Source of the DNA: Eukaryota sp. TZLM1-RC
Taxonomy: Eukaryota > Protista > Metamonada: BaSk clade
NCBI GenBank assembly: GCA_040285825.1
Contig: JAUPSS010000011.1
Coordinates: 620,001-684,000, forward strand
Length of the DNA stretch: 64,000 bases
Reading direction: 5' to 3'
A model generated the notes under the pieces. The model did no database searches. It was not told where the DNA came from and saw nothing but the letters and a program-made list of their open reading frames with translations. Both the position numbers and the translations under genes were made by a program. This document shows positions 2,075-39,307 of the stretch, in pieces (position 1 is the first letter of the stretch; each line of letters begins with the position of its first letter).

Positions 2075-3745
2075 TTATTTCTTTTTCTTGGTACTTTTTT
2101 TAGAAGCCAATTCTGCGGCTAAATTAGCTTCCCTTATCGCCTCCAACTTACTTCTAATTCTTTTTTGAATTAAAATCGCTGAACTATGGGCCAATTCTGA
2201 AAGAACTTCCTCTTCAATTAAAAGAGTTAAAGTAAAGTTATTTGTAGCTACTAGATTGCTGAAATGAATTAAATCTGAAGTAGATATGAAAAATTCATTA
2301 CCAGTAACAATACTTAACAAGTCTAACAAACAACAAATACATTCATAAGGAGTGAAGTAGAATGCTTCATCAATATTCAGTAATTCACAAAAAGAGGGAA
2401 AAGAAAGGTCAATAATGTGGGTCAAGTTTATAGGAATTCCATTGAATTCAGCAGTAGTTGAAGTAATTGTAGATAGTTTTTGGTAAAGTCCCTTACATGA
2501 ACAATAATCATCAAAAAAGTTCAACAAATTGCCCACCTCCTTTTTGTTATATCTAAACAACTGAGACACCAAATCAATTTGATTGATTGATTGATTGGTA
2601 GTCAACATAAGATCAAAAGATTCGACCAAACTATTGAAAACCTCACCAAATGAGGTTTGGGGTTCGCAGTGTACAGCAAAGGAAAAACACATGTATTGAA
2701 TTAAATCAACAAACTCCCGAAAAGAAACACTTTCTAAAAGAATTGATTGCTCTAAGACTTTATTGGTCGAGTCTCTGTCAAGAACAGACTGGCATAAATT
2801 TAAGAATTCAAAAACAGGTTGGAAATCTTTCGCTTTAAAGAAAAAAACATTATTTAATTTCAAAGTGTGAAGAATTTTCCAAATTTCAACACTGCTTCGA
2901 CTGATGGCCGTGGTATCTGAAAGAAATAGAAAAGTTTTTGTCAATAAAAGCTTGTTTTGATTAATTAAATCCTGAATTAAGGGCAATTCCTCAGCAAAAA
3001 AGCGCTCAACTAATGGCAAAGTTCCAAAAGAGCAATACTCTTGCAAAATTTCACAAGAATCACTAGTCCAATTACCTAATAACTTTGTCCCATTCAGTAA
3101 ATTAGTCAGAACTCCAATACCATCTCTAGAGCCACTAGTGAAGTAACCTTTAAATAGGGAAGCTAACCCCTGACTGTCATTGATTGAAACCTGACCGTTG
3201 CCATGTCGATTACCACGATACCAGTTGCCGACGTAGACCACACCGCCAGGACCAGTAGATACCCCAAAACCATGCTTGGTATCTTCCTCGAAAATCCCCT
3301 CGAAAGATTCAGAATTAGATGACAATTTGCCCTTTCCGTATTTGAGGTCATTGAACCATTGCCCATCAAATGTTAGTTCTTTGCCATTAATATTAGCATT
3401 GTAGGTTCCTTTACCTTGTCGCCTTCCTTGATAGAACGTACCTTCATAACCCATTGAAGAACCTTGGCCATGAGGCAGCATACCCACTGCTTCTCCAGAG
3501 AAAAGTGTAGAGTCACCACGTTTAATTGTTGTAAAACCATTGCATCGGCCGTTGAAGAATGTAGAAATGATTGTAAGTCCTGAAGAAAACGTTAATGTTC
3601 CGGAACCATGAGGCAGACCGTGAAGGAAAGAACCTTCATAGTGGACTCCATTTAAGAAGGTGCATTGGCCTTGGCCGGAAGGAAGATTGTTTGATGTTTC
3701 ACCATCATAGTTGTGATAAAGAAGTTTGGTAGGAACATGAGTCAT
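2075..3745 (-). CDS. MORN-repeat protein with C-terminal IQ-like motif (radial-spoke/flagellar type possible)
   Basis: 556-aa ORF with many Y/FxGxF/WxxGxxHGxG repeats in the N-terminal half; AILIQKRIRS near the C-terminus. Confidence 0.85.
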   Translation of the reverse strand: MTHVPTKLLYHNYDGETSNNLPSGQGQCTFLNGVHYEGSFLHGLPHGSGTLTFSSGLTIISTFFNGRCNGFTTIKRGDSTLFSGEAVGMLPHGQGSSMGYEGTFYQGRRQGKGTYNANINGKELTFDGQWFNDLKYGKGKLSSNSESFEGIFEEDTKHGFGVSTGPGGVVYVGNWYRGNRHGNGQVSINDSQGLASLFKGYFTSGSRDGIGVLTNLLNGTKLLGNWTSDSCEILQEYCSFGTLPLVERFFAEELPLIQDLINQNKLLLTKTFLFLSDTTAISRSSVEIWKILHTLKLNNVFFFKAKDFQPVFEFLNLCQSVLDRDSTNKVLEQSILLESVSFREFVDLIQYMCFSFAVHCEPQTSFGEVFNSLVESFDLMLTTNQSINQIDLVSQLFRYNKKEVGNLLNFFDDYCSCKGLYQKLSTITSTTAEFNGIPINLTHIIDLSFPSFCELLNIDEAFYFTPYECICCLLDLLSIVTGNEFFISTSDLIHFSNLVATNNFTLTLLIEEEVLSELAHSSAILIQKRIRSKLEAIREANLAAELASKKSTKKKK

Positions 3746-3815
3746 TATTACAGATATTGTCTATAACAATGAAATGGGTGCCCTTTTACACCAATGAAGA
3801 GGGTCTGAGTTTTTA
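3746..3815 (-). ncRNA. Conserved family-A element end / candidate omega-RNA scaffold 3' part (copy A1)
   Basis: Minus strand CATTGGTGTAAAAGGGCACCCATTTCATTGTTATAGACAATATCTGTAATA|ATG; homologous to 15937-16005 and 39220-39307; terminal hairpin. Confidence 0.55.
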
Positions 3816-4470
3816 ATACTCTTAATACCTTCTTTTCAGAACCTTCATCAACCTTGGCTCTCTGTAGGTATACCGGTCTATCTCCGCCATTTACATGTGC
3901 TTCCATCATCATCAACATATTCAGCGAAGCATTTCGATCTCTATTCCACAAGCTTTCGCATGATTTACACATGGTAAGCCCGTGACGAATAGACATCTCG
4001 TGCCTCTTCCATGGCCTAGGATTTCTGCACCATCGGAATGTTTCAACTGTCTTCTCCGCTTTCTTACGGTTGAAACAACAGCAACTGGTTCGAAAGTCAT
4101 CAATTAAAAAGACCTTATAACCAGCCTTTTATCAATAGAATTCTCAAACCTTTTCCTTTGGTAGGTTCTTTGAATTTCATGTGTTTTCGTTGTTCCCAGT
4201 CTCCGATTCCAATAACTATTTGGCTGGGATCATCAATTACTGATTTGAATTTATGAATCATCTTTGCCTCAGATCTTGTGCGATTAATCTCAGCCCACCA
4301 CCTTAGTTTCCTAAATATTTTTTGATGATAGACTTGACCAACAATACTATTCACAAAATTCTTTTTTTTTGATATACTCCATAAATCTATCAAACCTGCA
4401 GCTTTTGGAATTGAAATGGGATAATGTTGCTTCCCATTCTGCTACAGATTTAGTCGTGTGATCATTATTT
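3746..4470 (-). pseudogene. Fanzor (family A) 3' fragment, frameshifted; 3' end abuts the MORN gene ATG
   Basis: Pieces FRKLRWWAEINRTRSE, VIGIGDWEQ..KEPTKGKG, RHGLTMCKSC..WNRDRNASLNM..GGDRPVYL are typical Fanzor RuvC-II, zinc finger and RuvC-III region. Last ORF stops at 3748, 2 nt from the ATG at 3745. Confidence 0.85.
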
Positions 4471-5168
4471 CTCAAATTTAACGAGTTATCAATTTCGTGG
4501 GGAATATTGATTTCTTGAGGTACTTTTCCTCTTAATAAACTAATTGTTCTTTCAGTCATTTGATTAATTATACTGCTGTTTAAATCCATCCTTTGTTGTT
4601 GCTCTTCAGATGGTTTATAATTATATAGATCAATCACTCTACCAGTAGAGTTACTTATTGTGATAAGACTGTCATTCCATATGCTGCCTCTGATTCTTTT
4701 GAATTTGTGTTTGAGCAATTATTTGCAAATTAAACTTGGTCTGTAATCATGTAACCAAAATTACCACAAAACGCAGGATATAGAATGATTAGAAGACACA
4801 AGTTGAAGAATTCAGTAGGAGAAATGCATCACATTAACACAATAGATTAAAGTAGACAACCGAAGTTAGTGAAGCAAATAACAAAAACATTACTTCATGC
4901 CTCGTCACCGAATTAAAAAAGTATTGATGTAATTAATTCATCACCATGAGGATTTAACAAAATTTCAACAAGGGAAAATAGCCAATTATAGTTGAAATTA
5001 ATTCTTAATTTACCCAATCCATAATAGTTGTTCTGAACATAGAATTTCTTAAATTGAATTTATTCCAAACAAATTAAATCTAGACAAACGATTATAACAA
5101 TTTATTTCAATGAAATAACTTTGTTAAAGGATCAATTAAATATTGCCTAGACTATAAAAAAACTAAAT

Positions 5169-6173
5169 CTAATCCAACTCAAATAAATCTTGCATTTTAT
5201 CATCCAATTCTTCAACTTGCGGAATTGCATCTTTATTTATAACTTCAACATCTTGAACATCAAAATCATCAAGCCTATTCAAAATGGAATTGCAAGTGTT
5301 GATGCAAGATGAAAAGTCTTCGTTCTGATCTTTGATTGGCTGCAATTGCTCAATCAAACCCTCAATCAATTTCCCCAGGTTAAAACCCCTCAGCAACTCC
5401 ATTCCTTTTTCCGAAGAGCATAACAAAAACAAGCTTTCAATTACCATTAATAAAATGTGACCATCTTCTTTTACTGGATCATTCACAATCACCCTTTCCA
5501 ATGACTTCCACAGTGTATCATTGGCATCAGTTAAGAGAGTAAGGTGAAGTGACTCATCAAATAGAATGTTACGAACTGCACATGCGGCACCTCCTCTTCG
5601 TCTGATGGAACAGGAAGAAAGTTGATCCAGGATGTGGGAAAACAGACTGGGTTGTTTTAAAGTCACCAATTCTTTAAACGATTTGAGCCTGGACACGTTA
5701 CCGAGAATAGGAGCGACAAAAGCAGCTTTATCATTCCCTTCATCAAAAGGTCGAGACATTTCCACTATGAGCTTAATGATAAATGACCCATTGGAAGCCA
5801 TTAGGGCATCGCATCCATCCTCAGACAAAGACAGGTTTGACAGTAACATTAATGCTATTTGAAGAAAAGGATATGACTTATCATTCATGATTCGCTCCAT
5901 TATTCGGGTAATTATACCCTCACTGATGATGTGGGATAAGAGGTCCTCTTCAGCAGAGAGATTAACCAATATATTATATGCCGAATGTACAACAATAGGG
6001 TCATCTAAAGACAACAGTCTACAAAGCTTAGGAAGTGCACCAATTTTGACAATGTCGTAACAAGTATCTGTATTGCTGTAAGAAGCTAATTCTCTGACGG
6101 CTAGACGTAGAACTTGACTGTTGTTTGTATTGGGATCAACAAAGCTTACAAGATCCACCAAAGATGAAGACAT
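5169..6173 (-). CDS. HGH1: HGH1 (FAM203) family ARM-like eEF2 chaperone
   Basis: 334 aa; LVNLS, MLLSNLS and RRGGAACAVRNILFD motifs; acidic C-terminal tail. Confidence 0.8.
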   Translation of the reverse strand: MSSSLVDLVSFVDPNTNNSQVLRLAVRELASYSNTDTCYDIVKIGALPKLCRLLSLDDPIVVHSAYNILVNLSAEEDLLSHIISEGIITRIMERIMNDKSYPFLQIALMLLSNLSLSEDGCDALMASNGSFIIKLIVEMSRPFDEGNDKAAFVAPILGNVSRLKSFKELVTLKQPSLFSHILDQLSSCSIRRRGGAACAVRNILFDESLHLTLLTDANDTLWKSLERVIVNDPVKEDGHILLMVIESLFLLCSSEKGMELLRGFNLGKLIEGLIEQLQPIKDQNEDFSSCINTCNSILNRLDDFDVQDVEVINKDAIPQVEELDDKMQDLFELD

Positions 6174-6199
6174 GGTAACAAATGAAGAATGAGATTAGT

Positions 6200-6387
6200 G
6201 CTGGAATTTTTTAAGACTCAACTGTGAATTTCTATCAAAACGCACTTCTAGCTTTTGACCAATTCATGCAATCTTGATAGACGTTAAGCTTACTTTAGAT
6301 CTATCACTATATGATATCACGATCAAATGATAGTTAAAGCAGCAACATCACAATACGCGTACAGGTACGCAATACATGGAAAAACAC
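6200..6387 (-). ncRNA. Candidate omega-RNA of the Fanzor at 6388-8301
   Basis: Directly 3' of the Fanzor stop. Inverted repeats TCTATCAA/TTGATAGA, CTATCA/TGATAG, GCGTAC/GTACGC. Shares GAAATTCACAGT (6221-6232, minus) with the region 3' of the paralogue (14032-14043). Confidence 0.5.
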
Positions 6388-8301
6388 TTATCTACGTGGT
6401 CTCCGGAACGCCTCAGGTCTTTCATTGTAGTAGTGCTCACTTATGGCAATCTCCAGCTGGTTTCTGGAAGATGAGATGTCCCTCGACCAGAATGTCTGAC
6501 ATTGAGGGCAAACAAACTTTTCATTGTTCACCCTCCCATCATCGTGATACAACTTTTGATTGAATACCTTACAGCAATTCGTTTTGGCAGATGTGTAGAA
6601 TTCATCTCCATTAGGCTTCACATATGTAAAATGTTTCTGAATCTCCTTCAAAAAGCGCTTCCTTGGGGTTTTCACAGATTGTCTTGATGGCCCATCACCT
6701 ACACTACCAAACCAAATTATGGTTTCTCTTCCATTAGCCATTAGTTTAATTTTTTCAATTAATCCCATTATTCTTTTTTGCCTTCTTATAAAGAAATCAA
6801 ACTTGTTGCGGCGCAGGGCTCGGCGATCTCCATTTATCAGCAGTTGGTCTAGTATAGTTCTCGGACGGAAGTCGGGATTGCTGATTTCTTCCTGTGTCGG
6901 TACCCACATCAAAGGCATTGCTACTTCATTAAGATATTTGTGTAAATTCTTAGCAAAATAGCAATTTGGTGATGCATGGGTCAGGACCGGGGGGTGAATG
7001 ATCTTCTTTGCGTTTGGATTCAGAACAAGGCCCGAAAGTTGATGATCAACATTGTTATTATCAATTCTTGATCCAATTGAATAACCACACAAATTTTTGT
7101 GATTAGGATCAATTGCACAAAATGAATATTCAATTGGATTAACTGGCGGAGGCTCATTGGCGTCGTCAGTTCTTCGACGTTGCCTAGGACGAACCTGTTG
7201 TTGAAGTCTAGAGTTTCGCTTTCGACTCTTTGCAGGTATATCGAGTTCACCACTGGCTATGGTGGTTGCCAATTCTCTGGCTGTCCGGCGATTCTTATTT
7301 TTTTTGGGGGCAAAAGAAAAAGTGAAGCGGATTGAAACAGCATCTGAACTGATTGTGTAAGTCAGATACTTCTTTTTTCTGAAAAAGGCAAACGGATCTT
7401 TCAGCAGACAGCGGTTGGCATTAAAAGAGACAAAATGCTTTTCCAGTTGTTGACTAAAAGAGATAAAGCCAGGTGAATAACTGGGGGATGGGGACACGGC
7501 ATTTCTTCGCATGGTGTCAGATGCAATATTTTCCAGAAAGGATAAAATATTTAGCCCAGCAGTGAATAAGAAGGTGATGTTGTCTGGACTGAGATCAACA
7601 TTGTCCAGCATTAACATAGCGTCAAAACGATGAGGGTCAGCAACCTGCTGAATAAATAGGTCCATTATGTACTCATGGTGACCTTCATCATACCATGCGC
7701 GCAAAGAGTCAGGGATAGTGGCTGCAGTCGTGTTCACCACTAATGAAGCATATTTCTTTGGGCAAGGGCACTCAAAGAAGGTAGCCATTGTCCGGAAGAA
7801 GTTCAGCTTCCAGGAGACAGGGCCATCAGTAAGTATTTGACAAAAGCTGTTCGCCATTTGCAGTGCGCGAAAGCTTCTAATGTCAGAATGGCACCAGTTG
7901 TCGGTTCCCTTCTGAAAGCCAATAGGAGGAAACGGCCAGCCAGGTCGGAAAGAGACATCATATAGTGCGCGGTACACTTCCATATGATTCTCGAATGGGC
8001 GTCTCACAGTCGGATGAGGTACCATTACAAAGTCTTGACATTGATACCAAAACTGTTGTTGATATAACCAGAAAGCCATTTCCGGATACTGCAGGACGAA
8101 CAGCTGTGCTAACCGGGCAGTAAGTACAGTGACAGATCGAATATAGCGAAACTGTCTTTCCATTGAAACAAGAGCTGCAGTAGAGAAGAACTGAGCAGCA
8201 CTTGCTGGAACTGTCGTCTTGCTGTCGTTTATTGGTTGCTCACGACGGTTAACCTCCCAGGGGAGTACACGCCCTCGACGTGGCAACTCTGGATTTGCCA
8301 T
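6388..8301 (-). CDS. Intact Fanzor-like RNA-guided RuvC nuclease (family B), 637 aa
   Basis: RuvC-I FCAIDPN, shifted RuvC-II DEFYTS, zinc site NCC...CPQC, RuvC-III WSRDISSSRN, C-terminal ERPEAF; basic NLS-like segment before RuvC-I. Confidence 0.85.
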   Translation of the reverse strand: MANPELPRRGRVLPWEVNRREQPINDSKTTVPASAAQFFSTAALVSMERQFRYIRSVTVLTARLAQLFVLQYPEMAFWLYQQQFWYQCQDFVMVPHPTVRRPFENHMEVYRALYDVSFRPGWPFPPIGFQKGTDNWCHSDIRSFRALQMANSFCQILTDGPVSWKLNFFRTMATFFECPCPKKYASLVVNTTAATIPDSLRAWYDEGHHEYIMDLFIQQVADPHRFDAMLMLDNVDLSPDNITFLFTAGLNILSFLENIASDTMRRNAVSPSPSYSPGFISFSQQLEKHFVSFNANRCLLKDPFAFFRKKKYLTYTISSDAVSIRFTFSFAPKKNKNRRTARELATTIASGELDIPAKSRKRNSRLQQQVRPRQRRRTDDANEPPPVNPIEYSFCAIDPNHKNLCGYSIGSRIDNNNVDHQLSGLVLNPNAKKIIHPPVLTHASPNCYFAKNLHKYLNEVAMPLMWVPTQEEISNPDFRPRTILDQLLINGDRRALRRNKFDFFIRRQKRIMGLIEKIKLMANGRETIIWFGSVGDGPSRQSVKTPRKRFLKEIQKHFTYVKPNGDEFYTSAKTNCCKVFNQKLYHDDGRVNNEKFVCPQCQTFWSRDISSSRNQLEIAISEHYYNERPEAFRRPRR

Positions 8302-9253: not shown

Positions 9254-10008
9254 TATTGTACCATCTTTACGTATTAAATCCAAACCCCCGTCGAACCCTC
9301 TACTGAGAAACAAAAGAAGATTTATCAAAAGCTCAATGAACGAAAATGACTGTTTGAATTTGTTTTCTTGCTTGGCTTCTGAATCCAGCTATTCTATGAT
9401 TTCAAGGAACTTTTACCTAAGAGCAGGTTGCGAAGAAGTAAAGACTCCTAGAGAGGGAGAAGGTGGATCTAGTGATGAATTGTCAAGCGATTTCAGTAAC
9501 CTAAAACTTGATTACGATCATTTTTCTCTTTTTGATTTCGAGCTTTATTCAAACTTTAGCATTCCCAAACTATTATTTGATTTAGTGTTAGACCTCAAAC
9601 AATCACTCTATGATAATCAATCAAATTTTGATTGGTTCGATCTTTCTGTCATCAATTCGCTCACTGATATAGCAATTTCGCTTGTTTTGTTTTTTTTATT
9701 GAAAAAATTAGACTATTCGTACTTGATGGATTTTGTTGATGCCCTTTCTTTTTTTACTCGGTTTGGGTCATTACGAGTAGCATTAACGGAAAGAATTGTT
9801 TTTAGTTTTCATCTATTCAATGAAAAAATTCAAATGTTTAGTTGTTTGGTGCTTTTATTGTTTTTTGAGTCGCCGTTTTCCACCATTATTAAAATTTTAA
9901 CTTTGGGTAAAAATTTCAAGAGGTCTGCTTTGATTGATCTATTTATACTAATCTTATTCAGAAATGAAAATTTAAAAAATTCGGACTATTTGAATCTTGT
10001 TGGTGATT
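9254..10008 (+). repeat. 755-bp near-identical duplicate of an internal piece of the kinase gene (44155-44909)
   Basis: Direct match from TATTGTACCATC to TGGTGATT with only a handful of substitutions; creates the spurious 230-aa ORF 9336-10028. Confidence 0.95.
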
Positions 10009-10043
10009 CAATGAGTACACAATACTGAATGAGTACATTGATT

Positions 10044-11813: not shown

Positions 11814-13769
11814 ATGTCAGACACCCCCTCTGTATCACGTGTATTCACTCGGTCTTGTGCACTTAACTCGCTGCTGACCCCTGCAGCGGTGCAACAAATT
11901 CGGACTGACCTTCCAGTGGTCACCGAGATTTGTCATGAAGCTTCTTTATTACTTCAATCTTTTCTTCTAAATTTTCCGTTGGCATCAAGAGCTTTAGTGG
12001 AACAGGATGTATGGTATCTGTTTATGACCGTCATCACCACTGGTTCTTTTCCAAAGCCTTCCACATCTAAAGGCCAACGCCAATTACTCCATATCTTTTA
12101 CAATGGATTTCTTCCTGAATGCCCACAAGACAGGTCTCTTGTTTCTGTGTGGGAAAATTCTTTAGTGCCTTACAGAAATTCATTCAATCTTTTCCTCAAT
12201 GATTGGCTGCAGTCCCAGAACTGTAATTTTATCAATAGAAAAGGGCTTTCTTCTTATCTTGCCTGTCGTGCTCGTCAATTGGCCTCCAACGTTAAGACAT
12301 GTTTACCCAAAATTTGTCAATCCTGGACAAAAAACTTTATTCGTGCTCATTGTAGAGCCCTGAATAAAACAAATGTCTTTGCAAATAATATTCTTTCACT
12401 TTTGCCAGATGAACTACTAGCCCAACCCGAGGAAGTAGTAGTTGATTCTGTTCTTGAATACCTCATCAATTTCAATTTGAATAATTCAAGAGAAAGATTT
12501 TTTTTATTGAATGCATGTAGGTTTATCTTGAATCTCTTTCAAAGATTTCCTACCACTGCCTCCCTACTGTCCTCACATGATAAAATCACTTTTCATCAAA
12601 GGAAATTAGTGAGCTTTTTCTCTTCAATCTTAAAATTTCACAATACTTACTCACTTTCTTTTCTCATATGCATTGCTGGAAGAAATTTAGAATAATACCT
12701 TTAGCTTCCCATAAAGGTTCTAAATTTATTGAGGTACCTTCACAAATTTTCCACTCTGTGAAAAAATTTCCAATTATTGAAGGATCATCTTCCAAAACAA
12801 AGTTCATCAAAAATACATGTCTGAAACGAATATTCAAACAATGTCCTTACCAAAAATTCAATATCAACAGAAAAAGTTTGAAAAATAGATTTAACAAAAT
12901 TTTATTGAAAACTAATGGTAATGAACTGCTTTTGACCTTTGAAGGTAAAAATAATGACTCAGAAAACACAGATGAGCTGGATGAACCACCGAAAAAGAAA
13001 AGAAGATCAAGAAATGAAATGAAAAGTGACCCTAATGCCAACAAAACCAGAGAAACACAGTTGAAGGGTACTAAAAAAATGCCCCGTCGAAGACGTAGAC
13101 ATCCAGTCGAAATTTTACCTGAAAGGCCCCTTATCGGCGTTGATCTTGGCCAATCAAGATTATGTGGTTACTTCTTAAATGACAATCAATGTGGAGTTAT
13201 CCCTTGTCCAACTGGCAGGAGGTACAGGACAAAACCTTCACCCAGTAAACACTCTCCCAACCAATATTCCGTTCAAAATTTCAACCAATATTTGAACCAT
13301 TGGAATTTGGTCAGGAGGAAAGTGTATTTGGAAAGTAATCGCCAGAAATGGAAAATAATTAAATTTGATAACCGCAGACGAAAAGAGAGACGGTTCAGAG
13401 AGACTCTCAACAAATTTCAAAGGCTGGCTGGACATCCTGAAAAACTCTATCTTGCTGTGGGTTCTGCTAATTTCCCTTCTCATTGCCGAAAAGTCAATCG
13501 ATATGGATCAGCAAGGGCTTTCAGAAAATGGTTGTGTTATCAAAAGGACGTGAAGCACTTGTCAACCAGTGAATTTAATACAAGCAAAATGTCAAGTTGT
13601 TGCATGGCCGAGAATATTCAAGCAGGCTCATGGCAGATGCGTATTTGTACTGAGTGTCAAATAGTATATGACAGAGATATTTCCGCTGCAAAAAAATATT
13701 CAAATTAAGAAGAAAGCGGAATTGTGGCCGGAAAGATACATTTGCCCAGATGCTCTGCTGAGGAGATGA
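11814..13769 (+). pseudogene. Fanzor-like RuvC nuclease (family B paralogue), split by two indels (possibly sequencing errors)
   Basis: ORFs 11814-12695 and 12668-13708. IGVDLG, SEFNTS, SCC..CTEC, YDRDISAA. Removing one A in the run at ~13690 extends the frame to ..WPERYICPDALLRR* at 13769, resembling the 637-aa copy's C-terminus. Confidence 0.8.
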
Positions 13770-15936: not shown

Positions 15937-16204
15937 TTATTAGATACTGTCTATAATAATGAGGTGTTCTTAGAGGGATTGAGTTGTTCAGAAGCGGAAG
16001 ATTTTCGCATTAATTCATTCATTTAAACCTCCAACAACCTTGGCTCTCTGTAGGTATACTGGTCTATCTCCGCCATTTACGTGAGCCTCCATCACTACAA
16101 ACATATTCAGCGAAGCATTTCGATCTCTATTCCACATATTTTCGCATGATTTACACATAATAAGCCCGTGACGAATAGACATCTTATGCCTCTTCCATGG
16201 CCTT
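15937..16204 (-). pseudogene. Fanzor (family A) 3' fragment plus conserved end (copy A2); abuts the SCAMP-like ATG
   Basis: RPWKRHKMSIRHGLIMCKSC..WNRDRNASLNM..GGDRPVYLQRAKV is nearly identical to 3748-4020; ends ..CATTATTATAGACAGTATCTAATAA|ATG. Confidence 0.88.
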
Positions 16205-25596: not shown

Positions 25597-25647
25597 AAAT
25601 AGATAAGTCTATCTACACTCTAGAATAGTGTAAAGACTAACACTACT
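25597..25647 (-). repeat. 3' LTR core (51-bp direct repeat)
   Basis: AAATAGATAAGTCTATCTACACTCTAGAATAGTGTAAAGACTAACACTACT, identical to 30947-30997. Confidence 0.85.
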
Positions 25648-28600: not shown

Positions 28601-29400
28601 GCGATTTTGAGTCGTTCAGGGTTTAACCTGCGAGGTGGACGATAAACAACAGTGTCTTCATCGTAGAAATCGATGTCCATGGGGTTACAGTCGATGCCGT
28701 CTTCATGGGGTTTCAACGTGAAAACATCTTTGAACTCTTCAAGAGTTGCGAGGAGCTGTTGATTTTCTGATTGATTGTTGAGCTTTATTTGACAACCTGA
28801 CGAGTTGACGTGATCTTCGAATGTTTTTGACACCTTGAGGTCAGATATCTGTGAAATTCTGTGGTCAAACTCAGATTCAGGTAACATTAGTGTTCTGTGA
28901 AGCTCATCGAGATGAATGTGTACCCTGTCGTTGTTCATGAGGCTGAGTTCATATAGGATGTATATTCCTATAATTAGAGTGTTGTTGCCTGGAACGATTG
29001 GTAAGGATTTGGTAAGATGCACAACTTTGGCAATGCTACCGACGTTGAAGGATAGGATTCCTTTGGTATTGTAGTCAGAGTTTGATGGTTCTTTGTTAAC
29101 ACCAATGAATTTGAAAGATTCAGTGCAGTGTTCCATCTTGCATTTTGTAGATAGGTCTTTCGAGATGACGGATATGGATGCTCCGCTATCAATAAGGCCA
29201 GATACCTTTATGTTATTAATCTGCAACCAGAGTTCAATAAACGTGGGACAATTAATAGATTTATTGGCACAAACAGAAGACAAACTAAAAATTCTATTGG
29301 TATGCGAAGATTCAGGGTCACATGTGCTCAAAGGATTTAAGAGGCGTTTGGGAGGAGAATGCGACGATGTCAAAAAACGATTGTTTGAGAGAGTCGGTAG
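25643..29400 (-). pseudogene. pol: Gypsy pol (protease, RT, RNase H, integrase, chromo-like tail) with stop/frameshift
   Basis: LIDSGAS; LDLPKAYWQ, FGLKNVP, YIDE (YxDD altered); CDASDIAIGG; H..GH..CPLC, VDTIGP, SDNGPEF, NGLVER. Confidence 0.88.
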
Positions 29401-30780
29401 TATGATCTGAAGATGGATTGACGTTGGTAGATTGTGGATTCTTGATGTTAATTGTATTGATCCTGTAACTACGAGAACGTTTACTATCACTACTACTATA
29501 ACTATCCAAACTACGGCGCTTATTCTTAGGAATTGCAGATCTCTTGCAATGTGGATGTAGGCATTCCTTGACAGAATGACCTGGCTCTTTGCAAAATCCA
29601 TAGATGTCAGAAGGGGACGCAGCAGATTTATCGTCTTTGGCAGAGCGTTTCTTTAGATTTTTGACTCTGCGTCTGAGCTGCTCCTTGTTGGTCGATACTT
29701 GTTCGACATAATCGTAAATGTCGATAAGCTTTTGGTCTTGGGGATGGGGTCTCCCACCGAACATAGGACCTTGAGCTCCTGGACCAGTGAAGTTTCTGAC
29801 GGATTTCCGAGCTCGCTTTTGTTCCTCGAAGGTTCTGGTATTACACCAGTTGTTATAAAACTTAGAGAGAACATCGATGAAATCACTTAGACGGCGTTTA
29901 ACGTAAAAAGAAGAGTACGTCCAAGGATTGAAGAGCTCGTTGAAGAGAGGGTCAATTCCGAGGTTGTCGAGAATAGAGAACGCAATGTCCCATTCTTCGA
30001 GCTTGATTACCTCTTGATGGGGTTGGAAGCGATCGATAGCTAGTGTATCTCTCATCCCCATTGATTGATTGACGACAAAGCCGACCTGCGATATATATTT
30101 AATCCATCTACTCTGGTAATTGGAGATATTCCAATCCATTTTGACTTGGGATAATGTGAGTTTGGCAGTGGCCAGATTTGGAAACTGGGAAGCGAAGAGA
30201 ATGTTCTCCCACAGTTCTTCATCGTTGATATGATGGAGATGGAGACCGGGCCTTGTACCATCTGCAGCCTCGGCAAGGGTAGATATGACATCGGTGTCAA
30301 CGCAAGAGCTGATGCCAGCTGGATTGATTTCAACGCCAGCTCTGAAAATGTCCCACTTGTGGGCTGGCTCATCGTATCGTTGATTTAACGAAATGTAGTT
30401 GGGAAGATGAGTAGCGCGGAGAGTACAGGCTCTGTGAGCTACTGTAAGTTGTGTGAGACGTGCAATTTCATTAGTTAGAGCGACTTCGCGAGGGTTGTTG
30501 GGGTCACATTTGAAATCTTGAGAAATTCTATCATTGTACGCCGAAGAGATGAAGTCATTAATAAATGCAATGACCTTGCCAGTACTGGTAATCGTGTCCT
30601 TCTTGAGACGAGGGCGATTACGATCTTATTGAAGTTTCTTGGCTCGGTCGTCATAGAAACTACGAGACGCTTTGGACATAGCCGCAAGAACAGCGTTAGT
30701 GGTAGTAGTGGCGTTTTGAGGAGGGAGACTAGCACCATAGACTGTTTTTCCGCAGTCTGATACTTTAGTCTAGCGCATCC
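29318..30780 (-). pseudogene. gag: Gypsy gag-like region, frameshifted
   Basis: Upstream of pol; degenerate zinc knuckle YGFCKEPGHSVKEC. Confidence 0.6.
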
Positions 30781-30946
30781 TGTCTACTTGTTCCATGGGT
30801 TTATCATATCGAGTGTGACTTGGAACACCATCAAAAGTAGGATCGACTTCTTGTCCATCTCTGGTGATTTTAGGGAAACAGCGAGAGGGGCTGTCCCTGA
30901 TTTTGGTGGTGGACTGTGATGTTTTAGGAATGTTAAGCGAGGAATG

Positions 30947-30997
30947 AAATAGATAAGTCTATCTACACTCTAGAATAGTGTAAAGACTAACACTACT
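30947..30997 (-). repeat. 5' LTR core (51-bp direct repeat)
   Basis: Identical to 25597-25647. Confidence 0.85.
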
Positions 30998-31149: not shown

Positions 31150-33848
31150 ATACGCTACTAATTTATCAGCCAAAAAATGTCATTAAAAAATCCCATTAAC
31201 AACTCATCTATTTATCTCTTAAACAATCAAGGACCATGACATGCGTAATTTGCTTTTTAAGTGTGTTCACAATAGCCACTTAGCTACTGTCAGAGGAACA
31301 TCCTTCCTTAAATATTTTTTACTGTGCAGGAAGTTAGAGCTTGATTTTATGAATGGTTGTGATTACTATGCATTTCAAATTGAAGAAACAATTTCCCCAA
31401 TCGAAATTCCAAATTCAATGCATGAATACGACTATGATGCCTTTTCTATTTTAATGATTTCTCAATTCAATAACCCGATTTAAGCTCCATAATTTTCAAA
31501 GAATCAATTGAATTAGTTGCAAGGAGGAAGTATGTTGTAAAACCAAATAACGAAAAGATTCCAGATTTGTAACTATCAAAGATTGAAGCTAAAAAAGTAA
31601 ATAAAGATATGGATATTTCGAATTGCACTCTGAAACAGAAAATCAGTTATAATTTATTGAATTATTATATCCACTTTTACAAAATCTTGATACTGAGCTT
31701 GGTCAAAGAAGGATCAATTTCCAGATAATACATCAATGAATCGAGTTTCACACTATACGGCCAAACAACTTGCCATTAATTATGGAAATAATCTCCGCAA
31801 ACACTTTCATCGATACGTTTTGCGTTGGCTAAACATTATCACCTTGAAGTAGTTCAGACTAGAACAAATTCAGGAAAATCATTTGAGAAAGAATTATTGA
31901 CTAAACTCAAAAAAGTCAGGTGAAGCCATTATCCGTATGAACTTTGATGAACTTCCTATCAATGGTCACATTGTTTTTCCCTTTCCCCAGTCAGAGTTGA
32001 CTTCGAAGTTTTTTGCTTATGTGAAACATTGCTGAATTCCAACTTTTATTTAATGTAAAAATCTTTATTATACTCAATAAGCCAAGCCACTGAATTTTCT
32101 CTCTCATGCTATAGTTGTTAACAGAACCATTCAATCATTCTGTTCCCAGGATGGCAAACCTTTGTCAGTCAGTAATCCTTTTGCATTGACAACTACATTG
32201 ATTCCACAGAATATAAGACTTGATACTCATTGGGTCAATGAAAGATTGGGCAATTTCAAAGGGAGAGCAAATGACATAAGGTCATCAGTTTTTACCGAAA
32301 TGCTAACTGATAAGGCATTAGATTCTTACAAACGTGAGACTAAAGGTTGCTCTCAATTGTAACAGACAGGATTGCTTGTTCAGTCGTCTTAATTCGTAAA
32401 GACCAGGTTGATGAAAATGGAAATGTTTTCAAAAATTTTACTTCCAAGACGTTAGCGCACCCAGAGCGATGCATACATTCCTTGTCTGAAAATGTCGAAA
32501 AGGTGAAGTTAAAAGATAAAAGAATAGTTGCCATTGACCCTAACGAGTACGATTTAATGCACTGTGTTTCTCCAAATCCTACTGTAACTATTACCCCAGA
32601 ACAAATTTCACAAAATGTGTTTTATAAAAAAGGACAACTTCCAGAAATTAGAAGCAAAAAACACAAATGCATTAAAAGAAGAAAAAAACAATTACAAAAT
32701 CTATAAACCTATTCAAACTCTGACTCTGATTATGTACGGCTGAAACTCAAACACTGGAGGAACACGTTCAAATATACTGCCGGTGAACACCAATTTGACA
32801 GAAAAAGTACCAAATATCGTTCAACGGAAAAAAGGAAAAAAGAAAATTGGAAAGTACAATTACCTCATGGTGATTACTCAAGTCAGGATATTGGAAATCA
32901 ATTTTCTTTATTTGTATCAAACAGACAACAAAAATCTTGTTTCAGTCAACATTTTGGTCATTACATCAAGGAATTTGAGCAATGCAATGTTCATAAATAT
33001 ACTTTTTACCAAGATATATGGTTCAGAAAAAGAAAATTTCAAACGTATTCGAATAATCAAAGAAGTGAAAAAAACATGTTGAAAAGATTCAAATTGACCT
33101 TTGGCTCCCCTGAAAACGTAGTTACTGGTTATGGTGACTGGAGCTCGAAAGAAAAAACAAGGAAGGGAAAAAAGACAACCATAAGAGGAACCGAAATTCG
33201 CAAACTATTAAGAAGATTTGGTCATCGAATTTTCCTAGTTGATGAATATAGAACGAGTATATCTTGTCCTAGTTGTGCTGCCAAGGGAAATTTTGGAGAA
33301 TGTGTCAATGATTCTTGTATTAAAGTGTTAGGTCCTAAGTGCAAACGACAACTAAAAAGAAAAGCAAACAGTTAAAACAAGAAATTGATTTATTTAATCA
33401 AAACAATCCTACTAGAAAAAGAGATTTTCAACAAGAATGGGGTGAGCAGAAGGATTCACTAGAAGAAAAAGCAAAATCCACATCGTGGGGTTTAGTGAAG
33501 TGTCAGACGTGCAACACGTATTGGAATAGAGACTTCAACTGTGCCATAAATAAATATTCCATTATAACATCTGCAATCAACGGTAAAGGTAGACCAAAAA
33601 CTCAAACAAAAAATTTCGAAAATGGATCATCTACTTCACAGAGAGATCAGAAAAAGAAGACTGCTGAGAAGGACAAAAAACCGAAAAGATTTGGTAAATG
33701 TCGCGGAAAAGGCCACAACAGAAGAAACTGTCCATCGCAAGTTCCTGAAACTAGCATATCCTCATCGGGCACTAAAAGAAGACAAGGAGGAACTAAAAAG
33801 AGAGTAATCAAGACGATCTCTGTAGAAGAAAAAATCAGTCCATCTTAA
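31150..33848 (+). pseudogene. Full-length decayed Fanzor (family C) with C-terminal zinc-knuckle extension; stop is 3 nt before the next host ATG
   Basis: N-terminal ..HLATVRGTSFLKYFLL; RuvC-I IVAIDPN; GYGDWS..LVDEYRTSISCPSC; WGLVKCQTC..WNRDFNCAIN..GKGRP; tail FGKCRGKGHNRRNC. TAA at 33846-33848. Confidence 0.82.
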
Positions 33849-33851
33849 TCG

Positions 33852-34554: not shown

Positions 34555-37500
34555 TTAAATTATTTCTGAAATAATGCCAAACTCATTCGAATTTGAGATT
34601 AATAAATTCTTGAATTTTGATAAACTATCATTACCATCATTAAACAAATCAACTAATTTTAACATAGATTGATTTGAAGGAATGAAATCAACCAATTTAA
34701 TAAAGTTTTGAAATTCAGTATTTGATTGAACAGAATCAATCAAATTGATTGACAGTGACAACAATTGTATGAAACAATTTAAAATTTTATTTAAAAAGTT
34801 CTGATCAAATGAATCCAATGGAGCACGACCAACCAAAGCAGAAACGTTAATCAAAAGATTAATCAAATTTGGATTTGATTGATTGAAGTTTGATTGAGAG
34901 CTAATCACATTTGTATCAATTGGTAAACAATATTCCAACAAATTCACCAAATAATACTGATCAGTACCCATCAAGCAATGAGTTGAAAAAGGAAACAAAT
35001 TAACATTTGATTGATTAAAAAGAGTTTGAAACCTGGAAATATTAGAAAAGCAGTAAATCAAATCAAATGCAATCAAATCTAGGGTATTTTGATTGAATTC
35101 CGAGTAATTGGTGGTTAAAAATTTTGACAAAAATTGATCAATAAACATTGGTGAAGGTGAATTAATGGAAAAAAGAGTAGAAAAAATCGAAAACTCCTTA
35201 ATAAAACCCATTTTCAAATATTTGATAAATGTATCTGAAATTTTTAACAAAAAAACTTCCACTGCAGTTTCTGTTGACGAAAAGTACTTGATCAATAAAT
35301 CAATCAAATTTTGATAGAAGTCAACAACCAGGAAGGTGGGAGTAGACTGGTTTTCAGTTGGATCAGTAAAAGTACTAATAACAAAGTTGAGTAACCTCAC
35401 AGTAAATGATTCTGGAATTTGACAATAATCAATCAATCCTATCAAATTGATTGCCCATGAACCGAGAGTTAAGTTCATAAAATTTTGGTTGACAAGTTCA
35501 AAATTCTGAGCCAAAGTTGCAACAACAATTGAAAATAAATTAGAATTTTGAACTGCGTTAACATTGTTTGAGAATACATTGACTAAACAATTAACAAAAA
35601 GCAAATGGTTTTTTCTAGAAATCAAGTTCAAGCATAAAGTCCAAAATTCAAAGACTTCAGGTGACCGGAAAGTACCAAAATTGACTGAATTTATCAATAA
35701 TAAATAAATTGAACTAACTTCTGTATTTGGTTTGGTAAAATCGTCCATCAAGAGGTCAACTGACTGCCAAATTGATAATCCCCAGGTGGTGACAATTTTG
35801 GCTAGCGATGAATAAAATAGACTAGAAAGTCGTTGCCTAAGGGATACTTTGCAAAGGAATAGTAACACAGGAATAGCTGACGTCATTGCTAGATCAATAC
35901 TGGGTAGGTCAATAAGAAAATTGAGCCAATGGAGTGTCAAATTTTCAACAAAGAGATCAAAATTTGGTCCAAAATTGACATCAGACAAAACTTGAAAAAA
36001 TTGAGTGATGAAAGAAACTATATTAATTAGATTTAAATCAGACTTGAATGAAGTTTGCTGAAGATTTTCTGGGAATAATTTCAAGCAAAAAACGATCAAA
36101 GCTTTTGCAAAAGCACGAGAAGTAATTAATTTTGGAAATAAGTCAAAAAGAATTGACAAGGATGACTTCAAGTGTTCAGCAATAATATTTAAATCAAAAA
36201 ATCCAAGAATTTCAATCAAACAAATGGATAAGGAAGCCATAACATCAGTAGATAATTTCTTTTCCTTAAAAAGGACGATGGTGTTGTTGAAAATACTGAG
36301 AAAAAACTCAAAAAAGGAATCGGGAAGCAAAACATGACTTTGAGATGATAACAAAGTCACTAATCGGGAAAAAAAGGATAGATCATAATAAACGTGGTCC
36401 ATAACGTCATGGTCGCTCAACAATCTTGACGGGCTAAGATTTTGATCAAAAGAAAAAAGAAAACACGACTTAATTAGATTTTCAATGTAAAGGAAGTTAT
36501 TACCAATATTGTATTGAGAGAAAAAGACCACCAACGATGATAAAGTATTGTCTGGTGGAAAATTAAGAAACTTACAAATGTCACTTAAATGCAAAGACGG
36601 ACTTTGCAAAAATTCAGAATTTAAAAGATGACTAAATAAATTCGAAAGTGCTAAACCATTCAGAATGACAATTGAAACACCAAAGCTATCAAATACTGAT
36701 TTGAAAACCATACCAATAGTAGTTGATTGTTCGGTCATTTCCAAATCAAATCTGGCTAAAGAGGTGGATAGAAAAGCCGGTGAAGTTCTCGGTAACGTAA
36801 TACTGTATTCAGGATCAGAAACTTGACTGTCAGAATGATTGATTAACAGAAAATTGATGATTGACAGTTTATAAAAGGACTCTGACAAAAACTTTCCAAT
36901 TTCAAAGCAATTTCGATGATGTGCGAATTCAAGCACAATTTGAGGACTTAATTTACAAACAAAGGAAATCAGTAAAAGAAATGAATCATCTTTTTCGCAA
37001 CAATTATCAAAGAGTAATTCGAGACAAAAGTCGACGAATCTTTTGACTGATCCATTGGAGGGATTCAAATCAAACAGACACTTCGGAATTAATACAAGAA
37101 GAGAAGAAGGAAACGCTGAAACCTTATCTAAGTATCCATATAAAGATCTATCAAGAGATAAAAGGTCAAATAACGGCGAGTCAAAGTCAAGGGTACCTTC
37201 AGACCCTTCTTTTCCTTTTTCTACCTTTTCTTTTTCTTCTTTTTCTTTTTTGTGCTCAGAATTCCAGAAAAAGTCAGATTTTGAAATATTGTAGTTAGTA
37301 GTAATGTGATCAACTTCAAAAAGGGAAGAAGCACCAGATACTACAGAACCAATTGAACAAGATCTAGATCTACAATCTATACTGGAAACTGATGACTCAT
37401 CAGGGTCAGAAAATGATTGACTTGTTTCAGGAAAAGAATGTGCAAGATTTAATTCGCAATTAAATTGTGAATTTCCCTTAAATGGAGATAGAAGTGTTTC

Positions 37501-39219
37501 TTTGGTTGAAACTAATTCTGAATTGGATCTTTGACAAAAAAACTTGGAAACAGAAACGACAACATCCAACAAGACACAAGATTCAAGCTCCAGTAAATAA
37601 TTATTTTGAGGGCCAACAAAGATTAGCAAAGTATTAATTAACCATGATAGAGATGTTAGTAAAGGTAAAAATGAGGGGAGATCTAAACCTGAATTCGATT
37701 GGATTAAAGATTCAAATTTGACTAAAAAACAAACCAAAACACATAGGAAATCGGAAACCCAATCACAAAACTGATTATCTTCACTATCATTTTGATTTGA
37801 TTGGTAGCTTCTCAAGATCATACCGTTAATTCCACAGAAAAATAAAGCAAGATTAAGTGCTGAAACATTATTTGAATTACTTAAACAGTGCTTTAAAAGT
37901 CCCGAAATTAATTTTAAATCAATTAATTGATGGAGGTCCAAAAACTCGGAAAGAATAACAAAATGGTCAATTACTGTTACAATAAGAGAAGAGTCTCTAT
38001 GGCTGAGTGATTTTAACATTGATGAGTAAAATACTTGAGGAAAAGAATTGGAAACTTTCTTGAATAAATCTTTTGTATTAGAAACTAAATGTAAATTGAC
38101 AACATTAATTGAGTGATTATTTAACGACAAGTTTCTGACACTACCAATACAAATAAGGAAAAGTTCAAAAAATTCAGCTAATATTAAAGAATCAATATCT
38201 GAAAATTGAAAAAGAAACGTACATAATCTGCTTAGATGACAACTAAACACAATCATTTGGTCCAATCCATCAATTTTGATTGATTGACTATCATTGACAC
38301 AGCAACTGCCACGTAACCAGTCAGAAAACCCTTGAAACAGCTCATAATCTCTAACTAACAAGTGACTCAATGAATGAAAAAGTTTATGATAGACCTTTTC
38401 TGAAAATGCAGTTGAAGGCAACCTTCGAAAAAGGTCAAAAAGGCAAATAATACATGATTGGTGGCAGTTAATAACTGGGAAGAGTACACAGTCAATCAAA
38501 TCATTAACGACAGCAAGTGAATGCTTTAATGCATAGTCAAAAACTAAAGGAAACAAAGAACTAAATCGTTTTTCAAAATTTAAATTAAATTTACTACTAT
38601 TTTCAAGATAAACTCCAACTATTAATATAAAAAGATCAACTATTTTAAAAGATTTGGTTATTATTAAGTTACTTTTAAAATGATTTTCAAAGCAAAAAAG
38701 AATATTATCAAGTGTTATAAAAGTAAAGTCTTCAAAACGAGTCAGTAAATTGACCCATGTTATGGAGCTACTCTTTTCACCTGATGAGCTATCTGCCAAC
38801 TCATGACAAGACTCAGCCATTATTGCTGAGTAAACAGCCAGAGGAAGAGAAAGATCAAAAAAATCATCCTTTCCTTTCGGTGTAAAAAGCTCCATAAAAA
38901 AGCTTGGGCAGCTACTTTCAATTAAAAGACAAAGAGTTGTGTCAAGTGAAGTAATCATTGACTGAGTGAACAACTTTGAGTTTGGTGAGTTAAGGCATAG
39001 ACCTCTTACAACAGTCTGTACAACCGATGCTACAGCTGACACCGAAGCAGAGTCAGTGGTAAGGGTTCGTTGAAGATAGAAGCAAAGGTGTGAGGTGAAA
39101 AGTTGTTGGTCAGATTCAATGGATGTTACTGACTGTAGAAGAGTGAGCAACTCTTGGCAATGTGAAGCATTGTACCTGTGTTTTCTAAGATGTGTGAAGA
39201 TATTCTTCAAAGACTTCAT
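34555..39219 (-). CDS. Large (1554 aa) L/F/S-rich, probably alpha-solenoid protein of unknown function
   Basis: Long uninterrupted ORF; no recognisable motif. Confidence 0.8.
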   Translation of the reverse strand: MKSLKNIFTHLRKHRYNASHCQELLTLLQSVTSIESDQQLFTSHLCFYLQRTLTTDSASVSAVASVVQTVVRGLCLNSPNSKLFTQSMITSLDTTLCLLIESSCPSFFMELFTPKGKDDFFDLSLPLAVYSAIMAESCHELADSSSGEKSSSITWVNLLTRFEDFTFITLDNILFCFENHFKSNLIITKSFKIVDLFILIVGVYLENSSKFNLNFEKRFSSLFPLVFDYALKHSLAVVNDLIDCVLFPVINCHQSCIICLFDLFRRLPSTAFSEKVYHKLFHSLSHLLVRDYELFQGFSDWLRGSCCVNDSQSIKIDGLDQMIVFSCHLSRLCTFLFQFSDIDSLILAEFFELFLICIGSVRNLSLNNHSINVVNLHLVSNTKDLFKKVSNSFPQVFYSSMLKSLSHRDSSLIVTVIDHFVILSEFLDLHQLIDLKLISGLLKHCLSNSNNVSALNLALFFCGINGMILRSYQSNQNDSEDNQFCDWVSDFLCVLVCFLVKFESLIQSNSGLDLPSFLPLLTSLSWLINTLLIFVGPQNNYLLELESCVLLDVVVSVSKFFCQRSNSELVSTKETLLSPFKGNSQFNCELNLAHSFPETSQSFSDPDESSVSSIDCRSRSCSIGSVVSGASSLFEVDHITTNYNISKSDFFWNSEHKKEKEEKEKVEKGKEGSEGTLDFDSPLFDLLSLDRSLYGYLDKVSAFPSSLLVLIPKCLFDLNPSNGSVKRFVDFCLELLFDNCCEKDDSFLLLISFVCKLSPQIVLEFAHHRNCFEIGKFLSESFYKLSIINFLLINHSDSQVSDPEYSITLPRTSPAFLSTSLARFDLEMTEQSTTIGMVFKSVFDSFGVSIVILNGLALSNLFSHLLNSEFLQSPSLHLSDICKFLNFPPDNTLSSLVVFFSQYNIGNNFLYIENLIKSCFLFSFDQNLSPSRLLSDHDVMDHVYYDLSFFSRLVTLLSSQSHVLLPDSFFEFFLSIFNNTIVLFKEKKLSTDVMASLSICLIEILGFFDLNIIAEHLKSSLSILFDLFPKLITSRAFAKALIVFCLKLFPENLQQTSFKSDLNLINIVSFITQFFQVLSDVNFGPNFDLFVENLTLHWLNFLIDLPSIDLAMTSAIPVLLFLCKVSLRQRLSSLFYSSLAKIVTTWGLSIWQSVDLLMDDFTKPNTEVSSIYLLLINSVNFGTFRSPEVFEFWTLCLNLISRKNHLLFVNCLVNVFSNNVNAVQNSNLFSIVVATLAQNFELVNQNFMNLTLGSWAINLIGLIDYCQIPESFTVRLLNFVISTFTDPTENQSTPTFLVVDFYQNLIDLLIKYFSSTETAVEVFLLKISDTFIKYLKMGFIKEFSIFSTLFSINSPSPMFIDQFLSKFLTTNYSEFNQNTLDLIAFDLIYCFSNISRFQTLFNQSNVNLFPFSTHCLMGTDQYYLVNLLEYCLPIDTNVISSQSNFNQSNPNLINLLINVSALVGRAPLDSFDQNFLNKILNCFIQLLSLSINLIDSVQSNTEFQNFIKLVDFIPSNQSMLKLVDLFNDGNDSLSKFKNLLISNSNEFGIISEII

Positions 39220-39307
39220 TATTGCAGATATAGTCTATAACAAAGGTATAAGTGTTCTTTTTACACCAATGTGGAGGGAGTGAGTTTTTTGAGAAGTGGA
39301 AGATTTT
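39220..39307 (-). mobile_element. ORF-less family-A element end (copy A3) abutting the ATG of the 1554-aa gene
   Basis: CATTGGTGTAAAAAGAACACTTATACCTTTGTTATAGACTATATCTGCAATA|ATG aligns with A1; distal plus-strand GAGGGAGTGAGTT..GAAGTGGAAGATTTT aligns with A2. Confidence 0.78.

Follow-up and report, generated by a model that had tools for sequence, protein, structure and literature searches.

We analyzed a 64-kb stretch of contig JAUPSS010000011.1 (assembly GCA_040285825.1), hereafter the window. It comes from Eukaryota sp. TZLM1-RC, a metamonad described as Skoliomonas litria that is free-living and haloalkaliphilic (PMC11603281) and whose genome of 31.9 Mb in 16 contigs has 35.8% GC, is 55% repetitive, and holds 15,224 predicted proteins (PMC11316075). 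The 3′ end of one family of Fanzor-derived elements in this genome, here called family 1, is placed site-specifically at gene starts, far beyond chance. Our preferred reading, to which we assign a probability of roughly 0.5, is that these ends are the 3′ termini of dead, 5′-truncated copies of a Fanzor1-carrying element that integrates in one orientation directly 5′ of the native ATG. An original prediction made from the sequence of the window had reported three such ends at host start codons and had proposed that a guide RNA (omega-RNA) directs the element to them; the placement was borne out and extended to further loci, and the RNA-guided part fared poorly.

An 85-amino-acid (aa) Fanzor C-terminal query against a representative protein library returned, from S. 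litria, in-frame fusions to unrelated proteins (P0002 with EnY2 and P0005 with RING-HSP70) as well as stand-alone fragments; a second protein search gave 18 annotated family-1 fragments, all from S. litria and none from sister isolates. P0002 and P0005 (L003:6001-6525 and L002:6001-8179) are themselves likely misannotated read-through fusions of a Fanzor C-terminal remnant to EnY2 and to RING-HSP70, respectively. The sample used throughout was 225 kb, made up of the window and ten further S. litria loci (L002 to L011), and was scanned with a 95-nucleotide (nt) profile of the terminal module of the element using nhmmer. Broken Fanzor open reading frames (ORFs) were queried as separate pieces or displayed with their stops, and no joined spliced models were used.

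Three family-1 ends adjoin start codons in the window

All three family-1 ends in the window lie on the minus strand and, as predicted, each adjoins the first ATG of an ORF, of 556, 202, or 1554 aa. The first, A1 (3746-4706, minus strand), is a 5′-truncated, frameshifted pseudogene of about 958 nt that extends up to the base preceding the ATG of a 556-aa MORN-repeat protein (2075-3745, minus strand; Pfam MORN, 2.9e-21), an annotated gene in GCA_040285825.1. The junction reads ...TGTTATAGACAATATCTGTAATA/ATGAC (the slash marks the boundary), with the element ending at 3746 and the ATG at 3745-3743. By local alignment, A1 is 90% identical to the longest copy in the sample, that of L006; it gives tblastn matches with P0151, P0255, and P0007, and its ORF pieces lie in three frames. 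Its terminal module of about 90 nt (3746-3837, minus strand), the Fanzor 3′ tail that reaches the ATG, matches the module profile at E = 2e-22. A2 (15937-16296, minus strand) is a shorter, more diverged copy of about 360 nt, in which a coding remnant with the zinc ribbon and RuvC-III is followed by the module (15937-16011, minus strand; E = 6e-12). It adjoins the start ATG, at 15936, of a 202-aa ORF (15328-15936, minus strand) with several hydrophobic stretches; the SCAMP-like label given earlier to this ORF was not confirmed, as it has no Pfam match. A3 (39220-39312, minus strand) is a solo module, the last ~92 nt of the element (E = 1e-22; 90% identical to the consensus), adjoining the start ATG, at 39219, of a 1554-aa ORF (34555-39219, minus strand), and tblastn upstream of it found no Fanzor coding DNA.

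That A1 and A2 are continuous with Fanzor C termini, as had been claimed, was evident from homologous coding DNA upstream of both modules, with the zinc ribbon and the WNRDRNASLN motif of RuvC-III, 89% identical over ~190 nt. Each of the three ATGs is the first possible start, because a TAG within the conserved TTATAGAC lies in frame six codons upstream of each. The 15-nt core TTATAGACWRTATCT occurs exactly three times in the 64 kb, solely at the three junctions, and looser matches are at chance level. Farther upstream of A3 there is a dispersed repeat unrelated to the module (about 39925-40387, minus strand, 706-1168 nt from the A3 ATG), which is 81% identical over 462 nt to about 2788-3244 of L002.

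Placement at start codons across the sample

Scanning the 225 kb with the terminal profile yielded 16 module copies, 13 of them outside the window. An ATG directly follows the module in 16/16, and it opens a real ORF in 15 (binomial P ~7e-54 against random placement), such that the predicted location of a Fanzor 3′ end at the start codons of unrelated genes describes all sampled copies except one. The host genes are unrelated in function and include those for MORN, EnY2, SGF29, RING-HSP70, UCH, acyltransferase, DUF3161, and galactokinase-like proteins, among others. Identity between copies falls from 0.63-0.96 to 0.24 precisely at the ATG; because the sequences downstream are unrelated, the insertion events are independent. 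Four copies (L006:1545-1759, L007:8800-8906, L007:5659-5704, and L008:1857-1933) were chance finds in flanks, or about 1 per 36 kb, which suggests hundreds of copies genome-wide, a rough figure given that transposon flanks may be transposon-enriched.

We also considered whether the module could be a plain, non-mobile host promoter motif, common at genes with no Fanzor linkage. The module is absent (E <0.01) upstream of all 70 other annotated genes, 2 of which have a degenerate resemblance to it, and the pyrimidine-rich leaders described earlier upstream of other genes were seen. This motif explanation is contradicted by the absence at 0/70 other genes, by the contiguity of 12/16 modules with Fanzor coding DNA, and by the fit of the remaining modules to the truncation series described below. 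Degenerate look-alikes of the module end stand before two more genes, at L003:1957 and L007:11485 (GTTATCGAGATCATATCTGACA/ATG and CCATTGTTGTAGACATTTAGA/ATG, respectively); these may be older copies, in which case the share of affected genes would be higher.

Identity and truncation of family-1 copies

Family 1 is a relative of Fanzor1: among structures in the PDB, P0151 matches the Fanzor1 proteins of Parasitella parasitica (9CF0; E = 4.7e-20) and Spizellomyces punctatus (8GKH; E = 4.4e-18), with alignment of RuvC-II (LIDEFRTS) and RuvC-III (WNRD). Family-1 fragments hold DPGKSDL, LIDEFRTS, CCCFNC...CKSC, and WNRDRNASLN, corresponding to the RuvC-I D, the RuvC-II E, the CxxC zinc ribbon, and the RuvC-III D, and PF07282 appears in precomputed annotations. 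All copies examined are pseudogenes with stops and frameshifts, and the best of them, in L005, is broken by five in-frame stops. Copies share a constant 3′ end, and their 5′ breakpoints are all different, with copy lengths of 46, 63, 92, 100, 222, ~360, ~460, 670, ~850, 958, ~1000, 1311, 1356, 1922, and >2560 nt. Length is unrelated to identity with the module consensus (Spearman rho, -0.01), and copies of 63-222 nt match that consensus at 96-98% identity. Age therefore does not account for the truncation, as short copies are as close to the consensus as long ones; the truncation looks like a property of copying from the 3′ end or the result of very early events. Upstream, the L006 copy extends into an ORF bearing a PolB-exonuclease-like motif, and it ends ~100 nt before the ATG of a divergent neighbor. 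A boundary shared by L005 and L006 was tried as the 5′ terminus of the element and rejected; it is a truncation in L005, and L006 continues upstream.

Fanzor coding remnants are attached in 12 of the copies and absent from A3, L007:8800-8906, L007:5659-5704, and L008:1857-1933. The latter four would suit a promoter cassette already dispersed in the genome, into or beside which Fanzors home or with which they became linked by recombination or gene conversion, so that similarity would end at the end of the cassette. The arrangement in L008, where a copy of a different Fanzor family (family 3) is joined to a 63-nt module 97% identical to the family-1 consensus, points the same way, as do families 2 and 3, which likewise lie 19-66 nt ahead of genes on the same strand, and the degenerate module-like strings at L003:1957 and L007:11485. 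We nevertheless regard such a cassette as unlikely: lengths are continuous from 46 to >2560 nt with no step at the module boundary, identity passes smoothly from coding DNA into the tail, 12/16 copies have Fanzor coding remnants, and it would leave unexplained how the cassette reached many unrelated start codons.

A constant 3′ end, random 5′ truncation, and lengths unrelated to age are the classic signature of 3′-primed copying and thereby favor an RNA-mediated origin, either by reverse transcription of Fanzor transcripts that begins at their 3′ end, at a nick close to the start codon (target primed, as in long interspersed elements [LINEs], with the reverse transcriptase acting in trans) or by recombination of a chimeric cDNA. 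Reverse transcriptase genes exist in the genome, the L008 chimera of families 3 and 1, in which the joint lies at the exact family-3 3′ end with 3 extra nt, resembles template switching, and the U-G pairs of the terminal palindrome described below suit a sense-strand RNA. We consider this origin quite unlikely, since the junctions lack a poly(A), simple-repeat, or LINE-type tail and showed no target-site duplication, and since family 1 has neither a linked reverse transcriptase or endonuclease nor a reverse transcriptase ORF inside its copies. A version in which the host gene was itself copied from mRNA as part of a chimeric retrogene was rejected, because the host genes are single copy without a parental copy.

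Precision at the ATG could also be only apparent, if insertions were loosely promoter proximal and were then trimmed by deletion under selection for expression. Internal deletions are present in L003, L002, and A1, two long copies reach within ~20-100 nt of the ATG of a divergent neighbor, and the genome, although 55% repetitive, has compact intergenic regions (PMC11316075), all of which would agree with erosion of this kind. Junctions that agree to the nucleotide in 15 independent genes, however, are beyond what random deletions could give; short copies are as young as long ones, and the module is under no visibly stronger constraint. We find this explanation highly improbable.

The junction and its hairpin

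The junction consensus is ...ATATCTGT-NNNN/ATGR, in which 4 nt separate the end of the conserved part, ...TTATAGACAATATCTGT, from the ATG (0 and 5 nt in two copies). The 4-mers before the ATG are of an AAKA-like class (AATA, AAGA, GAGA, and AGTG) or a TTCA/TACA class. A host origin of these 4 nt was considered: AAKA-type 4-mers are much commoner beside modules than upstream of other genes, and the TTCA type matches the native context. At other genes, the base at -1 is A in 54% of cases, frequently as part of CA/ATG. The base at +4 is A in 11 and G in 4 of the gene-linked copies, i.e., a purine in 15/15 compared to 36/70 other genes (51%; P = 4.7e-5), and ATGA follows 11/15 compared to 20/70 (P = 4e-4). 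The continuation into ATGA that was first noticed at three junctions, and its wider form ATGR, are thus statistically real.

At A1, the terminus forms a palindrome, (T)CATTGTTATAGA-CAATA-TCTGTAATAATG(R) (3743-3771, minus strand), the 3′ arm of which includes the host ATG. Folded as RNA, it gives a 13-bp stem (z = -2.9), and the T preceding CATTG can pair with an A or G at +4, lengthening the palindrome. Covariation across 14 copies of the hairpin (86.8% of cells paired) was nothing beyond that of shuffles, and RNAalifold of the last 280 nt (-15 kcal/mol; covariation term, +1.05) left a conserved RNA unsupported; in both cases the copies are too alike for power. A search of Rfam matched the small-subunit (SSU) rRNA only, with no match to the element end, and ARAGORN found no tRNA genes. 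The palindrome with its included ATG and its pairing with the +4 purine, the random 5′ truncation, and two other gene-proximal Fanzor families all go beyond the original prediction.

A stem-loop at the end of the element, directly before the flank, is what would be expected if an omega-RNA carrying the first 15-20 nt of the host coding sequence as its guide directed the Fanzor to start codons for insertion or homing, as had been proposed. Fanzor guide RNAs cover both the 3′ end of the ORF and the end of the transposon, with the guide itself supplied by the DNA downstream, and the preferred target-adjacent motif (TAM) matches the insertion-site sequence (Jiang et al. 2023, PMC10312701); this known layout and TAM match lend the model support, and the shared ATGR could serve as a TAM-like motif. 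The three 18-nt guides given in the original prediction are the correct first 18 nt of each ORF. A guide derived from the flank is nevertheless tied to the locus that its copy already occupies; being the flank of an inserted copy, it re-targets that same locus and cannot lead to new genes. ATGR is present in filled and empty sites alike and hence does not discriminate, all copies are pseudogenes, there is no covariation-supported scaffold, and no Rfam family matches. RNA-guided targeting of start codons is therefore very unlikely.

A native start codon and putative promoter replacement

In one host gene with detectable sister-species orthologues, the start codon could be compared across species. 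The galactokinase-like protein of L008 starts MTFCLRIHSPARVNLIGEH and aligns with its TZLM3-RCL orthologue, MTCSFYVKTPARVNIIGEH, and that of GEM-RC1, MIIRTPSRVNIIGEH, with an equally short N terminus; since the N terminus is kept in these orthologues, the ATG beside the module is, by this alignment, the native start, and at least in this case, coding sequence was neither gained nor lost on insertion. The orthologous locus in TZLM3-RCL reads ...ACTCACTCA/ATGACC and contains neither the module nor a family-1 Fanzor within 21 kb. Comparison with orthologous empty sites, suggested along with the original prediction, therefore succeeded for the native ATG and for a locus lacking the module, and it fell short upstream, where the DNA is unalignable and the protein itself is only 45% identical, such that TZLM3-RCL gives a rough picture of the empty site. 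A search with the MORN host protein returned no skoliomonad orthologue and hence no empty site. The annotated start of the galactokinase-like gene (P9112_002954, L008:10530-11831) is 27 codons too far downstream and cuts off the PARVNLIGEHTDY signature.

Between 0.05 and 2.5 kb of Fanzor-derived DNA directly precedes intact genes. In L004, Fanzor-derived DNA (5357-6725) makes up all but ~20-35 nt of the divergent intergenic region (5336-6725). With such DNA directly in front of genes that are intact, a promoter and leader must be carried by the element end or at least be tolerated by it; as intact, conserved genes are preceded only by Fanzor-derived DNA, we strongly infer from this arrangement that the end of the element has replaced, and would now supply, their promoters.

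Proposed mechanism and points against it

In related metamonads, transcription starts merely a few nt upstream of the ATG, and this is the likely route by which a DNA-level process could find translation starts. We propose that the integration machinery of the family-1 element selects a site at the transcription-initiation region, which in S. litria would apparently lie within a few nt of the ATG, given the frequent A at -1 and CA/ATG of native genes, and that a short pairing check may act between the YCATTG hairpin foot of the element and CAATGR in the target. Copying would start at the 3′ end and often stop early, giving 5′-truncated copies, and the terminal ~90 nt would then act as the core promoter and leader of the downstream gene, making insertions tolerable. 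In any omega-RNA from such a copy, the guide would consist of the first host codons, a consequence of insertion that would allow at most re-homing to the same locus. More tentatively, and as a possibility we would not call probable, the element recognizes functional gene starts and inserts in the sense orientation exactly 5′ of the native ATG, its hairpin foot pairs with ATGR, and its ~90-nt cassette replaces the promoters of perhaps several hundred genes (roughly 5%).

A number of observations weigh against integration of a mobile element at native start codons. Neither a transposase nor an intact source copy of family 1 was identified in the sample, the 5′ terminus of the element was not reached (even the longest copy, L006, is 5′ truncated), no inverted or plus-strand copy of the end motif that could form terminal inverted repeats was found, and there was no consistent target-site duplication at the 5′ breakpoints. 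The module copy at L007:5659-5704 is an exception to the placement, as the ATG after it opens merely a 16-codon ORF, and one long copy (the equivalent of L007:5911-7018) lacks the terminal 60-100 nt altogether. The exact boundary between element and target is ambiguous, since the 4-mer classes are independent of other module variants. Conservation is lower in the module than in the coding part (0.63-0.70 compared to 0.85-0.96), and there is thus no sign of purifying selection acting on it. Pairing over 4-5 nt cannot by itself single out start codons, because these make up only what we take to be ~2% of AATGR sites in the genome, and the determinant that recognizes gene starts is something we purely infer. 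Finally, the sample covers 0.7% of the genome and was partly seeded via annotated Fanzor fragments. An ATG lies within 3 nt of three 5′ breakpoints and was considered as a possible duplication; it was dismissed, as the adjoining bases mismatch the 3′ flank and the occurrence is not significant.

If the placement reflects an insertion preference, it would follow a "safe-harbor" logic in which the coding sequence is left unbroken and a replacement promoter is carried in. If the proposal is true, this would be a start-codon-specific transposon that brought about a genome-wide promoter swap, and a sizeable share of the genes of one protist may run from a single transposon-derived cassette, giving a concrete case for the role of Fanzor-carrying elements in eukaryotic genomes.

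Other Fanzor families and features of the window

Besides family 1, at least five more Fanzor-like genes or remnants lie in the window. Family 2 (6219-8301, minus strand) consists of an intact 637-aa Fanzor-like ORF (6388-8301), in a GC-richer stretch (41.5%), with a 168-nt conserved 3′ tail; the protein has a weak Pfam match to the TNB domain and no sequence match in the PDB, and the element is possibly still active. This copy ends ~46 nt before the ATG (6173) of a same-strand DUF383 gene, and a second family-2 copy (L011:10001-11043) ends 19 nt before the ATG of another same-strand gene. In P0257, an annotated protein, an N-terminal piece of family 1 is joined to a C-terminal part of family 2. 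Family 3 (17534-20622, minus strand) is a Fanzor pseudogene with a PolB-exonuclease-like N-terminal region, and its second copy (L008:1-1857) is the one whose exact 3′ end is joined, via 3 extra nt, to a terminal 63-nt piece of the family-1 module that itself lies just ahead of the ATG of a gene; the two families share ~27% protein identity. Families 2 and 3 both stop short of the genes they precede, and family 1 is the only one of the families to reach the ATG; sense-oriented, gene-proximal placement may be the general behavior of Fanzor elements in this genome. Other Fanzor/TnpB-like families are represented by genes or remnants at 12668-13708 (plus strand), 32353-33600 (plus strand), and ~47400-47700 (minus strand), one of which is a 346-aa ORF with a TNB-domain match; none of these ends at a start codon.

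A PolB-exonuclease-like N-terminal region on the Fanzor protein is supported for family 3, where PF03104 is a precomputed match of the 787-aa L008 protein and a weak one (E = 2e-4) at 20200-20622 of the window; for family 1 it is suggested by a YCLRDTDL-type motif in the region of L006:4567-5325. An exonuclease fused to an RNA-guided nuclease, if true, would be of separate interest.

Elsewhere in the window, a tandem satellite of ~462 bp, with at least 26 units that are 65-100% identical, occupies 49040-62725, interrupted at ~52.8-54.4 kb; directly downstream of it is a eukaryotic SSU rRNA gene (63209-64000) that runs off the end of the window, and the satellite units are probably intergenic spacer repeats of the ribosomal DNA. 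A Ty3/gypsy-type retroelement (25593-30997, minus strand) has protease/reverse transcriptase and integrase ORFs (PF00078 and PF00665) and is bounded by 55-nt direct repeats that are 98% identical. A 755-nt duplication links 9254-10008 to 44155-44909 (98.9% identical), and a 230-aa ORF (9336-10028) repeats an internal part of a 1136-aa kinase-like gene (43811-47221).

Comparison with known systems

To our knowledge, no mobile element uses the start codon of ordinary protein-coding genes as its insertion site, and the literature we searched described neither the insertion of Fanzors or any other element at start codons nor Fanzors in metamonads. Family 1 resembles the Fanzor1/OMEGA systems (8GKH and 9CF0) in its RuvC-II, RuvC-III, and zinc ribbon, which align at E values of 1e-18 to 1e-20, and in the non-coding tail from the ORF to the element end, where known systems encode the guide RNA (PMC10312701). 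It differs from the Fanzor elements described in the searched literature in its position at start codons, its spectrum of 5′-truncated copies, and its lack of detectable inverted terminal repeats, and from characterized Fanzor1 proteins in that all copies are dead and the protein seems to bear a PolB-exonuclease-like N-terminal region, which for family 1 is only suggested.

The orientation-specific insertion next to a very short adjacent target, the subterminal hairpin, the lack of a target-site duplication, and the one-ended or truncated copies are all reminiscent of HUH-type single-strand transposons (IS200/IS605, IS91, Helitrons, and Replitrons). For IS608, Barabas and colleagues reportedly found in 2008 that bases at the foot of the hairpin pair with the target and thereby read it. 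No Rep gene was seen in the 225 kb, however, and a 4-nt target cannot explain restriction to start codons. Helitrons are known carriers of Fanzors (Craig 2023, PMC10288648), but family 1 lacks their 5′-TC and CTRR-3′ termini and their A-T insertion; it ends in ...CTGT-NNNN with a flank that starts at ATG, and a hairpin is present.

Position-specific retrotransposons include Ty3, which is found at start sites of RNA polymerase III, and R2 and SLACS/CZAR, which are found in specific genes. Family 1 would share with them a nucleotide-precise placement relative to genes and, with those lacking long terminal repeats, a constant 3′ end with random 5′ truncation. It would differ from them in its DNA nuclease cargo, in having neither a linked reverse transcriptase or endonuclease nor a 3′ tail repeat, and in targeting hundreds of different RNA polymerase II genes rather than one repeated target.

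As with mobile elements that have outward-facing promoters (bacterial ISAba1 and IS1-type activation, and eukaryotic promoters derived from transposable elements), an intact gene directly follows the family-1 end, which must either drive or allow expression of that gene; in those cases, the distance to the gene varies and there is no start-codon specificity, whereas the promoter activity of the module here is putative. A last likeness is to TldR and other TnpB-derived RNA-guided transcription factors (PMC10705468), in that TnpB-family loci are tied to the promoters of specific genes; those factors are intact, nuclease-dead bacterial proteins guided to a promoter, whereas the family-1 copies are pseudogenes linked to their genes by physical insertion.

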